A stretch of 63,810 bases of DNA, the filler included, from Reticulomyxa filosa (Eukaryota > Protista > Foraminifera), in assembly GCA_000512085.1 (NCBI GenBank). It is 19 parts of 19 records of this genome, joined end to end, with 100 filler letters (N's around TTAATTAATTAA, not from the genome) between each part and the next. Parts side by side here need not be neighbours in the genome. Positions count along the whole stretch, not along the records: positions 57,720 to 63,810 come from ASPP01024046.1; 18 more parts are not named here. One strand, 5' to 3'. The translations under genes were made by a program, and so were the position numbers. The stretch's first letter is position 1; each line of letters begins with the position of its first letter. Positions 57,720 through 63,810 of this stretch are shown here, in pieces. The notes under the pieces were generated by a model that did not search any database, was not told where the DNA came from, and was given only the letters and a program-made list of their open reading frames with translations.

Positions 57720-57758
<39 letters not shown>

Positions 57759-58343
57759 TATATGCCCCCAAATTTTCTTGAACCACTTGTGAACTTTTTT
57801 TGGTTACTGTTTGCCTAATTTATTTGAAGTTTTGGGTGGGTTTTGTTTGCAACAATAAAATAACGTAATCATAACATTAAAAAAAAATACAATTTTACAC
57901 ATGCGTCAAATCGACCTCCTTTTCGATTTTACCCCAAATCTATGCTTCCCTTGTAATTTTTTTTTTGTTCCTCCCCCCACTATGAAAACGCCTTTTGATC
58001 CCTTTCCTCATATTCTCCTTATACTTGTCATTTTCTTGTTCCAACTGCTCATAACATTTTGGTTAATTTTTACAACGATGAGGAAATAAGGGAATGTAAC
58101 CGAGTTGTTGTAGTACCTCATATAGAAATAACATACTTTACATTTTTCTCAATACCTTGTAGAGCGTGTCGGTATTGATATATGTTTCAATTTACCCAAA
58201 AATAAATGTATCAAACAAAGATTTGCAAAGTTACTTTAATTTTATAAAGCTAAGACAATACTTGTTGCGTCGTAGAGAGGTTACCAGCTAGATTTTTTTT
58301 GTGTGTGGTTCTTTGCTCCCTTTATTATATCCCGGAAAAAACA

Positions 58344-59435
58344 ATGGAAACACTAAAGTCTTGGTATGGTATAGCAGTGACTTATGTCAATTCAAGCAGG
58401 AAAAATCAAATACTGTTTGGAGTAGTGATTCTGCCTGCAACTTTGTTAATTTTGACGAGAGCGTTGTTGCGAAGTCGCGCGCCAGCATACAACAAACTTC
58501 GAGGGGGTTTGCATGAGGAGATAACACTGCCACGGAAGCTGAAGAGCATGGACATCGAATTGTACCACAATTGCATAAGCACGTGCAGCGTGAAAGTGCG
58601 TCTGTGTTTAGCAGAGAAGCGGATCCCATACGTATCGAATCACATTCACTTGATAGAAACGGGATGGTACGAGTCGTGTTCGCCCGAGTTTAGTCTGATA
58701 AATCCAGGGAAAGTGGTTCCAGTGTTAGTGTTCAAAGGCCATCCCGTGTACGAATCGGACGACATAATCGAATTTATCGAGACGAAGTTGGACTCGTACG
58801 CGCAAAAGAAGATTGCGTTATTGTCACCCGGCGACAAAGACAAGGAAGCAAGAGCAGTGGAGATAATGAATCGATGGTTGCAACAGGGATCAACCAAGCA
58901 TGAAGAGCACAGACCGACCCCGGCCGAGGAAATTGCAGTGTTATCGGTCCCGATCTTTACGGCGATGATGCAATATATCCCCTTACGACATGTCTTCTAT
59001 GGCTTCATCTACCATTTCGAAATGAAGCGTCCGTTCTACTTCATGATGATGAAACTTCTCGGAACACGGTTTTTTACAAACCCCGGATTTTTGAAAAAGT
59101 TTTATCATGCCAGAGAACGCATGTCGTTGGCGCTGAAAGAGCTCAACGACAATCTGAAGGAAACCGGAGGTGATTACATTTGCGGCAAGTCCTTTACTTT
59201 GGCTGATGTCACTTGGATGCCTTTGCTCTGGAGGCTGGAGGAAACGGGACAAGAAAAACTGTACCAACAGTACGAATATGTCGATAAATATTGGAAGGCG
59301 TGCAAACAACGCGATAGCTTTGATGTGGCTATCACACAAGTTAATCAAAGCTTTCCCATTGTCGCTCAAGCTAGTGCCTTGTTGAAACAATGGAGAGCTC
59401 AGTATCCTCATATTGATGACATGTTGAATCCTTAG
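58344..59435 (+). CDS. Glutathione S-transferase (GDAP1/TCHQD-like N-domain) with N-terminal membrane anchor, intronless
   Basis: ELYHNCISTCSVKVRLCLAEK, INPGKVVPVLV...PVYESDDIIEFI, YICGKSFTLADVTW; TM-like ILFGVVILPATLLIL near the start. Confidence 0.88.
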   Translation: METLKSWYGIAVTYVNSSRKNQILFGVVILPATLLILTRALLRSRAPAYNKLRGGLHEEITLPRKLKSMDIELYHNCISTCSVKVRLCLAEKRIPYVSNHIHLIETGWYESCSPEFSLINPGKVVPVLVFKGHPVYESDDIIEFIETKLDSYAQKKIALLSPGDKDKEARAVEIMNRWLQQGSTKHEEHRPTPAEEIAVLSVPIFTAMMQYIPLRHVFYGFIYHFEMKRPFYFMMMKLLGTRFFTNPGFLKKFYHARERMSLALKELNDNLKETGGDYICGKSFTLADVTWMPLLWRLEETGQEKLYQQYEYVDKYWKACKQRDSFDVAITQVNQSFPIVAQASALLKQWRAQYPHIDDMLNP

Positions 59436-59806
59436 AACTCTTTTTTTTTCCCCCCCCTTCTTTTAACTGTCTTTGTTTTTTTTTTTAAAAAAACAACAGT
59501 GTGAATGCTAATGTTTCTTTTACAAAGTTTATAGTAAATCACTTTTCACACTAGCCAAATATAACTCTTGGAAATTACTTCAGCTTCATATTCATTCCAT
59601 CGGTTTTTTTTTTTGCTGGTCAATTTTTCCGTAGATTGAACTCAACCCAAAAACTAATTTTAAAAACTATTTGCTTTCTAAGAATTTACTTCTATTTAAC
59701 CTAGTTAATTATTTTCCCTTGAAGGAGGGGAGAGCAGTTTACAAAGTTCTTAAATGCCAACAAATTGTTAGTTGACACACATTTTTGATCGTTTTTCTGA
59801 TATCCT

Positions 59807-60365
59807 TTAATTGCTCTCAGGTAGCTCATACATCATATTGGCACCATTTTTGTTTGGTTCCGAACGGTCAACGTTCACAATAACACCTCCAGGTAGTTTT
59901 GAAAATAAGTCACCAAATATTGTCACCAGCAAAAGCGAAGCCATGTTGAGGACAGAACCAGCTAACCGACGGGCTACTATCTATAGTAAATACAAATTAT
60001 TATAATATATGGCTCATTCGGGCTCTTCTCCTTCCATTTTGTTTTATTGAATTATTTAGCATAGTTATAAAATGAATAACTGTGGTGGGCATTATCAATT
60101 GCATGACAAAAAATTGCAGGGCTCCCATCACCAAACCCCACGTAATTGCCAAAAATATGCCTAGAAGCACAGACAGCGACGCAAATATTCCCTTCTTGGA
60201 GGCATTGTAAACGCTTCTCTTGACTGAATACAACAATGACAAATCATCCGCTCGGGGTAACGTTTCTTCAAAAGAGAAATTATCAGAAAACTTCTGTTCA
60301 GCATGTTTGATAGAAAAGGTACTGTAATTCCCATCTTTTGCTTTCAAAAGAGTGCTTTGTTCCAT
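59807..60365 (-). CDS. Caveolin-like protein, 152 aa, 2 exons (60365-60081, 59980-59807)
   Basis: FSFEETLP...YSVKRSVYNASKKGIFASLSVLLGIFLAITWGLVMGALQFFVMQLIMPTT|IVARRLAGSVLNMASLLLVTIFGDLFSKLPGGVIVNV aligns by eye, ungapped over the core, with human CAV1 as recalled. 100-nt GT-AG intron. Confidence 0.7.
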
Positions 60366-61020
60366 TTTCAATGTGATTTAAGTCTTGTATGCAGCTAACT
60401 CTTCGATCCCCTTTTAAAGGACTGTCGCAAACTCGTTTTTAAAGATAGTTGTCAAATCGATTTCAGTAGGCTTCAAAGTTTTATTGTGAAACAGACTTAT
60501 CGATTTTGAGCGTATATACATTTTGTTCCTCTTTCGAGTAAGACCTATATAAGGCTGGAGATGGTAATTCTAAATCGTTTTATGTTCGCAATTACACCCC
60601 AAAATTTCGTACATGTTAATAATTGCTTATCAATAAAATCAAAAGCAATCTGATAATAAACTGGTTTTAGATTCCAAAATAACAATAAAAGTTAAAAATC
60701 GCAGAATTAGGCTCGATTGTCACACACTTTTAAGAGTGTTTAAGAAAGCTTATAGGCCAATAACTATAACAACACCGGTGTTACACATAGAGACAATATT
60801 TTAAAAAATTTTGTTAAAAATTATAAATCAGTTCTTTTCTAAAATGCACACTAACAGTGACAAGGGCGGAGCACCAAATAAAATGGCTCCAGAAAAATAT
60901 TATTTATACATTTTGTCATTTATTTTTTTTTTTAGTATAGTTCAATATTTGAGATTTTAATCATTTTTATTTGATTGAAAAAGTGAAAGTAAAGTTAATT
61001 AAAAAGATAGTGGTGTAATA

Positions 61021-61380
61021 CATGGAAGATACAACGAGCACTACTTACCGAAAATGCAATCGTAAAAAGATAAAAATTTAGTGGTGGAAGTATGATCGAA
61101 TGGTCTTGCTTTGTAGTGTTAGAACATTGTCATTCATGTAAAAGTGATGGATGTGTCAATGCAGACATATACAAAGAAATTATATGGTATTAAATGCTTA
61201 AAAGCATTGATTAGTGTTGATAATGAAAATTGTATATTTCACAAAGCAATTACAATAAAGGAATAGCTTGAACAAAACGATATCAAAGTGTTGAATTTAC
61301 CTTCAAATTCTACAGACCTGAACATAATAAAAAATATGTAGTTGACATTGAAAACAAAATATACAAAAATGGAAAGGTCT
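61021..61380 (+). mobile_element. Decayed Tc1-type transposase DDE-domain remnant
   Basis: KFSGGSMIEWSCF, DGCVNADIYKEII, KE*LEQNDIKVLNLPSNSTDLNIIKNM* correspond to KHGGGSVMVWGCF, DGxMNSxxY and WPSQSPDLNPIENLW; stops and frameshifts. Confidence 0.8.
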
Positions 61381-62911
61381 AGATGCTGTTTTTTCATGAA
61401 GAAAATCAATTATATATATATATAAGGTGCCGTTTTATGTGTTAATTCACTTTGCACTTATTATTCGTCAACTGTACGGTCACAAAATTATTATTAAACC
61501 AATATGGCCAGGCCATTGGCCGTTTCTGCTACGTTCTGTAATATTATATATGTATGTGTATATACGTATAGCCTAAAAAAAGTCTTCAATCAAATTTTTA
61601 GATAAATTTAGTCTAAAGCATTAAAACAGATTTTGATACATGTTTGGTGGTCGAACTGATCTCATATTTAGACTCTCACAAAAGCGCAAAGTTATGATTA
61701 TAACTCCTTGGCAGGCGATAAAGAAAACATTGTTCGTTCTAATTGCTGTATTGCAGTTATGGAATAACTTGTAACTATTATCTGAACGGATATTATACTC
61801 AGACAGCCGATTTTTCATTGTCGTTTTCTTCATTGTTTGTGAATGACTATCGATCATTGTATTACTTATATCAGTTGATTTGCCGTTGACATATTGAAAC
61901 TCCATTTGGTATGATGAAGGTACGTCCAAACTTATTCTTCATTTTAGCTATAACGTTGCTCAAATATATCAATTTTTGCTGTGTTTTTTTGTTGGCATCA
62001 TCACTATTATCATTTGGCTATGTTCGTATCATTAAGTCCATTCAAAATGTTGGGGTGGGCGACAATGCTTTGCCGACTGCTATCGAAAATACCAGTTTCG
62101 AACCAATGTTTGGATGTGCATGGTCAAAAAGAGGCAGACTCATGCTATGCGTTATCAGGTTTTGCTGAGTGTATGCAAGGAAAAAGGAACAGTGGATATA
62201 CTAATTTGCTATTAAATGATCTGGAACACGTCCATGAGCTATATCCTTTGCGCGATGATGCCACGATTGCGAGGTATGGTTTTTTTGACCCAACCACCGT
62301 GCAAGAAGCAAATTCTCGTCGGCCATTGCTGTCCATATACAATTAAACTACTTTTCCACTTGCAGCATCTTTTTTTTTAAAAAAAAACGGAGCTAGTTGA
62401 CAACTATGGGCAAATAAGATTTTTTTGGAAAGAGCTGTGTATTTACGATTATTGATTAATTGTTCCAGACCAACAATTGTGCTCTTTGTTACACATGAAC
62501 AACGAATTTTCAGGGGATCATTATTTTTGTCCAAAAAAAAAGATAAGAGTGAGTCGTTGCAAATGTCTGTTTATAAGCTTCAATGTAATGAATTTAAAAA
62601 ATAAGGGTGTCTTTTTTTTCAAAATAACAAATCAAAAAGGAATACATATGTATACTTCATTACAACAAGTAGGTTTTGACAGTACCAAAACCAAGTTTGA
62701 ACTATTACAATAAAAAAAAAAGAGCACGATTAAGCGAGTGTAAAAACAATGATTCGATCAACTTAAAGACAATAGCAGCAAAAATAATTGAGAACTGTTG
62801 CCGCAGCTTTGCTTCTGACCCTTGGCAAGTCTTTTCTACATTTTGCTTGTGAATTTTGAGCATTTAAAAAAGCAGCTATATTTCCGCAGGTTATATTTGC
62901 GTTATTTTATC

Positions 62912-63810
62912 ATGTCCCACTTCGAAGGTAAAGGTGGCATTGTAAGATAACAGTCTGTTTGGAGCAATACTAAATAACCTCTTTTGGTATATGAACCAAA
63001 AAAAAAAAAAAAAAAAAAGGTAAAACTGGAAGCAAAAGACCAAAGAATTTGAGTTCCAGAAACTCAACAAGCAAGTGTGGGAGTGGACACATCGAAGAGG
63101 CGTCCAGCTTGTCTGGCAGCCTCTCGAAAGTCACTCTCCCCAATGAACGAGACATAAATGAACATTATGACAAATTTCGCGAGTCCCACGGTGATTTTTC
63201 GACTCAGGTTTTTGTGTACGTATCCACCGACTAGAATGAGCAAACTTGAATTTTGTGTGTCCCCCCCCCCCATCCCTCTCCTTGTTCACTTCAAGAAATT
63301 GCTGGGCAGTGAGAGTAAGTACAATGATACCGAAGGAAACAACGATAGAAACAATAAAGTTTTGTCCCCTCCTTTCCCCTCCTCCGTCTGTATAATTGAA
63401 TAACACCAAAAGAAAAAAAGTTATTGTTGGACAACTCTTTTTTTTTATCCCCTTTTTTTTTTTTTTTTTTTTTTGTAGTCCCCTTTAAAAAGTTTGGTGT
63501 GCTACCCCGTGTTGAAATGCAAAAAAAGCGCAAACGCTCCAATGGCTCAGACAGTGGCCGGACTCCAAAAGCGAAGAAGAGAAGAGGCAACAATGACAAA
63601 GACAATTCCTCAGAGGTATGTAATTAATACACGATACTTGCTAATGCCTTTTTTTTTTTTTTTTTAAGTGTCACATGTCACATCACCCATCACCATAATA
63701 GAACCACTCTGAAGCAGACATGAAGAAACAGCTTTGGGAGGGATTTACCACATTTGTAACAGTTGCGTCACTCGTTTGCAATGCTCGAAACTTTGCTTTT
63801 TTTTTTTTTT
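62912..63810 (+). CDS. Hypothetical multi-exon gene (5' part) with a basic NLS-like segment
   Basis: ATG at 62912 followed by a GT donor; GC-richer exon-like blocks at 63019-63207 and 63491-63615 (KKRKR...KAKKRR). Confidence 0.45.

Follow-up and report, generated by a model that had tools for sequence, protein, structure and literature searches.

A divergent caveolin gene in the genome assembly of Reticulomyxa filosa and a probable caveolin group of foraminifera

Caveolins, as surveyed in 2025, are limited to animals and one choanoflagellate, Salpingoeca rosetta, and a candidate from Capsaspora was rejected (PMC12330381). The scheme of Han et al. from the same work divides these proteins into seven elements, of which the hook, the scaffolding helix and the spoke are universal, and the pin and strand are optional; the pin motif is limited to type II caveolins, type I being without it (PMC12330381). 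[quoted passage not shown] The HMM searches of that survey covered holozoan genomes only, Rhizaria are never mentioned in it, and it leaves the choice between inheritance and horizontal transfer undecided (PMC12330381).

The gene described here lies in a window of 63,810 nucleotides (the whole stretch of DNA that was analysed, along which all positions are counted). The piece at 57720-63810 is the complete 6091-bp contig ASPP01024046.1 of GCA_000512085.1. Under this accession stands the genome of Reticulomyxa filosa (PMC9231491), a foraminiferan, as had been proposed from the DNA itself. The contig has 35.7% GC and contains poly-T tracts. Its sole annotated gene is a GST, and the caveolin gene, unannotated, stands tail to tail with it (Table 1). 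Translation begins at an ATG at 60365 (context AAAATGG), exon 2 contributes 57 codons followed by TAA, and the predicted protein has a total of 152 residues. The intron starts with GTTATT and ends with TACTATAG; its GC content is 25%, compared with 40-43% in the exons. Introns of R. filosa average 87 bp. An initial sequence-only reading had proposed this two-exon gene, with the same intron, and had remarked that the ORF track misses exon 2. Translation and the register tests described below bear out the gene model, and the start of exon 2 is indeed absent from the track.

Table 1. Features of contig ASPP01024046.1, in window positions.
Feature	Position	Strand	Basis
Caveolin exon 1, codons 1-95: variable N-terminus, hook/signature, alpha-1 scaffolding helix, hydrophobic first half of spoke	60081..60365	-	translation; Pfam; 15 relatives
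F32-P37, FEETLP, facing the hook signature motif; group consensus FDxxFP	60255..60272	-	F32 invariant; profile alignment
L42-L68, equivalent of alpha-1 scaffolding helix (CAV1 81-107), first half amphipathic	60162..60242	-	model and hydrophobic moment
G59-T95, 37 residues without charge; G69, W76-G77, F85, P93 = CAV1 G108, W115-G116, F124, P132	60081..60191	-	relatives; 7sc0 alignment
Phase-0 GT-AG intron, 100 nt, two codons past the P132 equivalent	59981..60080	-	register; site common to seven related genes
Caveolin exon 2, codons 96-152 and stop: distal spoke, candidate beta-strand, variable C-terminal tail	59807..59980	-	translation; alignment to relatives' second halves
G127-V132, GVIVNV, candidate C-terminal beta-strand for central barrel	59870..59887	-	alignment to relatives
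GST	58344..59435	+	annotation
Decayed Tc1/mariner-like transposase remnant	61080..61400	+	weak DDE_3 match, E 0.14
Region of overlapping ORFs	61900..62350	+	
Probable unannotated gene start, truncated by contig end	63517..63810	+	
First exon of this probable gene	63517..63616	+	

The register test anchored exon 1 on nine intron-less relatives and scored the first 32 residues of exon 2 at 21 shifts. Zero shift alone scored positive (+95, the next best being -21), and the observed score was reached by 3 of 2000 shuffles; that register is kept across the splice junction had also been claimed at the outset. A unique acceptor restores the register, and it gives the 100-nt intron. In addition, seven related genes from three other samples (one each on L005, L007, L012 and L015, three on L006) carry a phase-0 GT-AG intron, 78-247 nt long, at the very codon where the R. 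filosa gene has its own. Since exon 2 is in exact register with the intron-less relatives and seven genes share both site and phase, the predicted intron is well supported. The common site also points to a eukaryotic family of intron-bearing genes that share a history.

Other readings of the 3' half were rejected. Read-through into the intron as the true C-terminus scores -184 against +117 for exon 2. All but one of the alternative in-frame GT-AG pairs remove 2-44 codons and the last adds 14, the register being kept by none. RNA contigs found through the GST (2-4 runs, shallow) cover the GST only, with no read over the caveolin gene or its intron.

Intron position varies among the relatives. 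For example, in L013:32-734 (Tara) the intron lies elsewhere, being in phase 2 and some five codons ahead of the conserved P, and L008 and L011 hold genomic caveolin copies with no intron. The predicted structures on these three contigs show intron gain or loss inside the group.

The rest of the contig holds several other features. The GST is intron-less, with Pfam domains GST_N_2, GST_N_3 and GST_C and a hydrophobic N-terminal segment. One close relative (69% identity) comes from a JGI sample; the remainder share 34-39% identity with it and, where named, come from bacteria, so that this may be a bacterial gene transferred into the R. filosa lineage. RNA-type contigs match it at 89-99% identity, which suggests several paralogues or alleles. 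The transposase remnant has broken frames and motifs resembling GGGSVMVWG and WPxxSPDLNPIEN, which we take to be consensus motifs of Tc1/mariner-like transposases. The truncated gene start is without a Pfam match; its first exon is K/R-rich and NLS-like and is followed by a 53-nt intron of the form GTATGT...poly-T...TAAG. The region of overlapping ORFs (85-121 aa) has slightly higher GC, its longest ORF is without a Pfam match, and it is possibly a decayed gene.

All tests were run exon by exon. Exon 1 alone matches Pfam Caveolin (PF01146) at 26 bits, above the gathering cut-off of 25 (E 1e-5), and matches no other family. Its first match in the ESM Atlas is Caveolin (0.91), and the ten best named matches there are all caveolin. 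Against the PDB, the three best matches are the three solved caveolins, although the pairwise E values are weak (0.03-0.36). The alignment to human CAV1 (7sc0) is gap-free over CAV1 85-132, with a numbering offset of 39. Exon 2 on its own matched neither Pfam nor the PDB nor the group profile at a significant level, and the C-terminal half taken separately did not significantly match the solved caveolins. A word-based homolog search with the exon-1 ORF gave no match.

The sequence-only reading had claimed caveolin homology, with 12 identities to CAV1 in exon 1 (K96, L103, S104, L106, G108, I109, A112, W115, G116, L122, F124 and P132), four further putative ones in exon 2 (S149, T154, L159 and F160), an F in place of P110 and FEETLP at the position of the FEDVIAEP signature, and had named the Pfam profile as a check. 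All 12 exon-1 identities occur in the 7sc0 alignment, P110 faces F71, and profile alignment with F32 invariant confirms the place of the signature. The homology itself is supported by Pfam, the ESM Atlas and the group profile run against the PDB. By every sequence test the gene is a true caveolin, and it is not of the CAV1 type (type II).

A full phmmer scan of exon 1 against 1.84 billion protein representatives returned 15 proteins. With a few further sequences these form one alignable, distinct caveolin group. Each of the 24 aligned rows has a match to Pfam Caveolin, and none matches another family at E 0.001; full-length relatives reach 29-49 bits against the cut-off of 25. In the relative P0030, for example, the match takes in Pfam Caveolin profile positions 23-131 of 133, and the Atlas places this protein at 0.95 with caveolin clusters. 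Profiles of the group, run against 177,635 PDB sequences, returned only 7sc0, 9dn0 and 9dn1, with E values of 1e-11 for human CAV1, 8e-11 for the sea-urchin caveolin and 5e-8 for that of S. rosetta.

The named members of the group come from Bolivina argentea (P0029, P0030) and Nonionella stella (P0038), both benthic foraminifera, in EukProt. Two others are MMETSP transcripts, and the rest are JGI, ENA (including Tara), Logan and NCBI contigs. P0030 and P0038 are 99% identical and were counted as one source; this hints at carry-over between the Bolivina and Nonionella transcriptomes. Pattern scans (two alignments) of JGI metagenome, viral and prokaryote contigs confirmed no relative within the reach of the patterns used. 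A search for foraminiferan relatives had been suggested together with the original claim, which concerned a single gene. That gene is real, but it does not stand alone, being one member of a group with other members in the Bolivina and Nonionella transcriptomes. Some relatives already bear automatic Pfam labels in public collections, so the signal has been available and seems unreported.

Several relatives have a more elaborate architecture. L006:308-5612 (ENA ERZ893790) carries a tandem of three genes, in each of which a Cys-rich N-terminus is combined with a hydrophobic helix and a pair of caveolin domains. One of the three has a weak PSI/plexin-repeat match (E 0.13-0.56). L007:2691-3712, from the same ENA set, is a two-domain gene lacking the Cys-rich part, and is followed by the start of another caveolin. 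The shared intron falls in the second caveolin domain of the L006 genes, and both contigs have 27% GC. We know of no animal caveolin that combines a Cys-rich part, a helix and two caveolin domains.

The universal caveolin elements can be recognised in the R. filosa protein with varying clarity. The hook, with its signature ahead of alpha-1, is present by sequence in a divergent form, and its shape is of low confidence in the model. The group profile aligns the FEETLP/FDxxFP position with FEDVIAEP of CAV1 and FDDSFP of S. rosetta. A helix is predicted from residue 42 onwards (mean pLDDT of 81-96 per 10-residue block in the monomer model), and the alpha-1 region has a hydrophobic moment of 0.48 (shuffle p 0.03), as befits an amphipathic helix. 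The spoke is represented by the uncharged stretch, identical in length in five relatives, by the conserved residues within it, and by exon 2, which is in register with the relatives and, in their second-half alignment, keeps the invariant G of IFG in the distal spoke. For the exon-2 helix, amphipathy does not exceed that of shuffled sequence (p 0.40).

Among the optional elements, GVIVNV aligns with GATINV, GTTVNV and GVVNV of the relatives; this candidate strand is absent from the monomer model. The protein ends in a polar tail after GVIVNV. The N-terminal region is unconserved in the group and gives no sign of a pin. With a signature that is divergent and shorter than the full FEDVIAEP, and with no pin motif, the protein departs from type II. 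P110 is likewise absent from most group members and from the S. rosetta caveolin; because that protein forms discs, and many group members also lack the residue, its loss is no problem. Modelled as monomers, P0030 and exon 1 each come out as one long helix, with pTM 0.33-0.41, and three fold searches with these models gave nothing or unrelated generic long helices, with no caveolin fold match. The caveolin fold exists only as an oligomer, and the monomer models were therefore treated as uninformative.

The new protein can be compared with each solved caveolin in turn. Human CAV1 (8S disc, 7SC0) has the same hook/signature position, alpha-1 helix and long uncharged stretch with G108, W115-G116, F124 and P132. 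The foraminiferan proteins differ from it in their signature (FEETLP in R. filosa, FDxxFP in the group), in a loop 2-4 residues shorter, in mostly lacking P110, in showing no sign of the pin motif, and in having a rhizarian host. The S. rosetta caveolin (9DN1) shares the pattern FDxxFP...E.VRK...Y and, like the R. filosa copy, lacks P110, but at 233 aa it is longer, its N-terminus and barrel being extended, and it is without the WG of the foraminiferan group. The type-I caveolin of Strongylocentrotus purpuratus (9DN0) is the best pairwise match of exon 1 (E 0.03), is of similar length (159 residues) and lacks the pin; it differs in being an animal protein, in keeping the P110 equivalent and in its low identity. 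Cavins are not known outside vertebrates, and classical caveolae are therefore not expected in foraminifera.

Within the group, the R. filosa copy is the most diverged row, an unusual divergence that the sequence-only reading had missed. It departs from 8 of 20 conserved exon-1 columns, where other rows depart from 0-6, and in exon 2 from 7 of 10. Exon 1 no longer has the F, R and W of the group; from exon 2 the P, G and C are gone. In a poorly resolved tree of the group alone its branch is 1.85, against a median of 0.36, and the best-scoring pairwise match in the core, P0021, has 38% identity. The group could thus be real and the R. filosa copy a relaxed or decaying duplicate, or one whose function has changed, the disc job falling to a better conserved paralogue elsewhere in R. 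filosa, or to none. Residues lost in both exons and the long branch agree with this, as do the missing annotation, the lack of caveolin RNA among the contigs found through the GST and the frequency of gene duplication in foraminifera (10.1101/2023.01.27.525846). However, that RNA consists of shallow contigs found through the GST, and the frame, stop, splice sites and exact spoke length of the gene are all intact. All four invariant exon-1 residues are kept, together with G69, F85, P93 and the 37-residue uncharged run. We regard decay or change of function as unlikely. A native member of a foraminiferan caveolin group, acting by the disc mechanism set out below, is a good deal more than a working guess and in our judgement the probable reading of the R. 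filosa gene.

Contamination is a known risk in rhizarian data (10.1101/2023.01.27.525846). Caveolin genes of eukaryotic prey or contaminants, whether animal, choanoflagellate or another protist, might be present in foraminiferan samples. The 99% identity of the Bolivina and Nonionella copies suggests cross-sample carry-over, the hook and alpha-1 motif resembles that of S. rosetta, and the neighbouring GST, with its mostly bacterial-type relatives, does not fix the host. Yet an animal contaminant should have drawn animal-named matches, and the 15 best among the 1.84 billion proteins include none; these matches form a coherent group. That same group occurs both in the R. filosa assembly and in separately made foraminiferan transcriptomes. 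The low GC, poly-T tracts and short AT-rich introns of the contig are presumably typical of R. filosa. A foreign source for these genes is very improbable, and the earlier view that the gene is native and not an animal contaminant gains support from the foraminiferan members and from the lack of animal-named relatives.

Convergence, in which a protein with a long hydrophobic helix or hairpin (reticulon/REEP-like, or with two transmembrane helices) merely scores as a caveolin, would fit the weak pairwise E values, a Kyte-Doolittle peak of 2.2, within the transmembrane range, and the empty fold searches, but it is already largely refuted and scarcely credible, given that the match takes in the polar hook and alpha-1 region and nearly the whole Pfam model in relatives, that every row of the alignment is free of matches to other families at E 0.001, and that the group profile finds caveolins alone in the PDB.

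If the native caveolin reading is followed, a mechanism can be sketched from the three solved caveolins (PMC12330381). The protein would be monotopic, inserting from the cytoplasmic side without crossing the membrane. About 11 copies would pack through their hooks, alpha-1 helices and spoke helices into a flat spiral disc. The hydrophobic face of such a disc, formed by the uncharged run together with the Leu/Ala face that exon 2 supplies, would stand in for cytoplasmic-leaflet lipids, and a central barrel may be closed by the GVIVNV strands. Discs of this kind would bend or order the membrane without cavins. Perhaps they buffer tension or aid trafficking in the very large, fast-remodelling reticulopodial membrane, which is the weakest step and a guess, though one in keeping with the cell.

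Where the foraminiferan genes came from can be considered in terms of the same comparisons. The group's scores for the human, sea-urchin and choanoflagellate caveolins are roughly equal and do not identify a donor. The hook/alpha-1 pattern looks closest to S. rosetta, but group profiles give that caveolin 36-38 bits and animal caveolins 39-48; S. rosetta, scoring no better than animals, is therefore not nameable as the donor. Among gene transfers in foraminifera, 26% were inferred to be opisthokont in origin, a figure subject to database bias (10.1101/2023.01.27.525846). We favour, somewhat beyond an even call, an old transfer from opisthokont prey (choanoflagellate- or animal-like) into a foraminiferan ancestor. 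Descent from the last eukaryotic common ancestor, followed by many losses, is the less probable course, and transfer in the reverse direction is less probable again. These gradings are judgements and were not computed.

The literature searched, with subscription journals mostly outside it, yielded no report of a caveolin in Reticulomyxa, foraminifera or Rhizaria. A preprint on gene transfer in Rhizaria, including its supplements, makes no mention of caveolin (10.1101/2023.01.27.525846), and among the papers listed on foraminifera and reticulopodia, one general review alone uses the word caveolae. What seems unreported is thus a caveolin group from a supergroup new to the family, some of its members having a new architecture. 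That foraminifera possess an old and diversified caveolin system, in which membrane-embedded discs shape or buffer the reticulopodia alongside Cys-rich, transmembrane and two-domain forms not known from animals, is a proposition for and against which we find the case evenly balanced.

Foraminiferan caveolins, from within SAR, break the published range of the family and offer a third, distant lineage for rooting it. If the proposition holds, caveolin discs would be a membrane module of two supergroups, either pre-dating the animal-choanoflagellate clade or moved by transfer. The forms with a Cys-rich, PSI-like part, a transmembrane helix and two caveolin domains could then couple an outside signal to disc assembly. 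The two-domain fusions could also test how protomer number and symmetry are set, because linked pairs cannot make up an 11-fold disc evenly. Foraminifera would provide natural test cases for the role of caveolin discs without cavins or caveolae, in cells with extreme membrane turnover. The origin of caveolins and their cavin-free function would both become testable questions.
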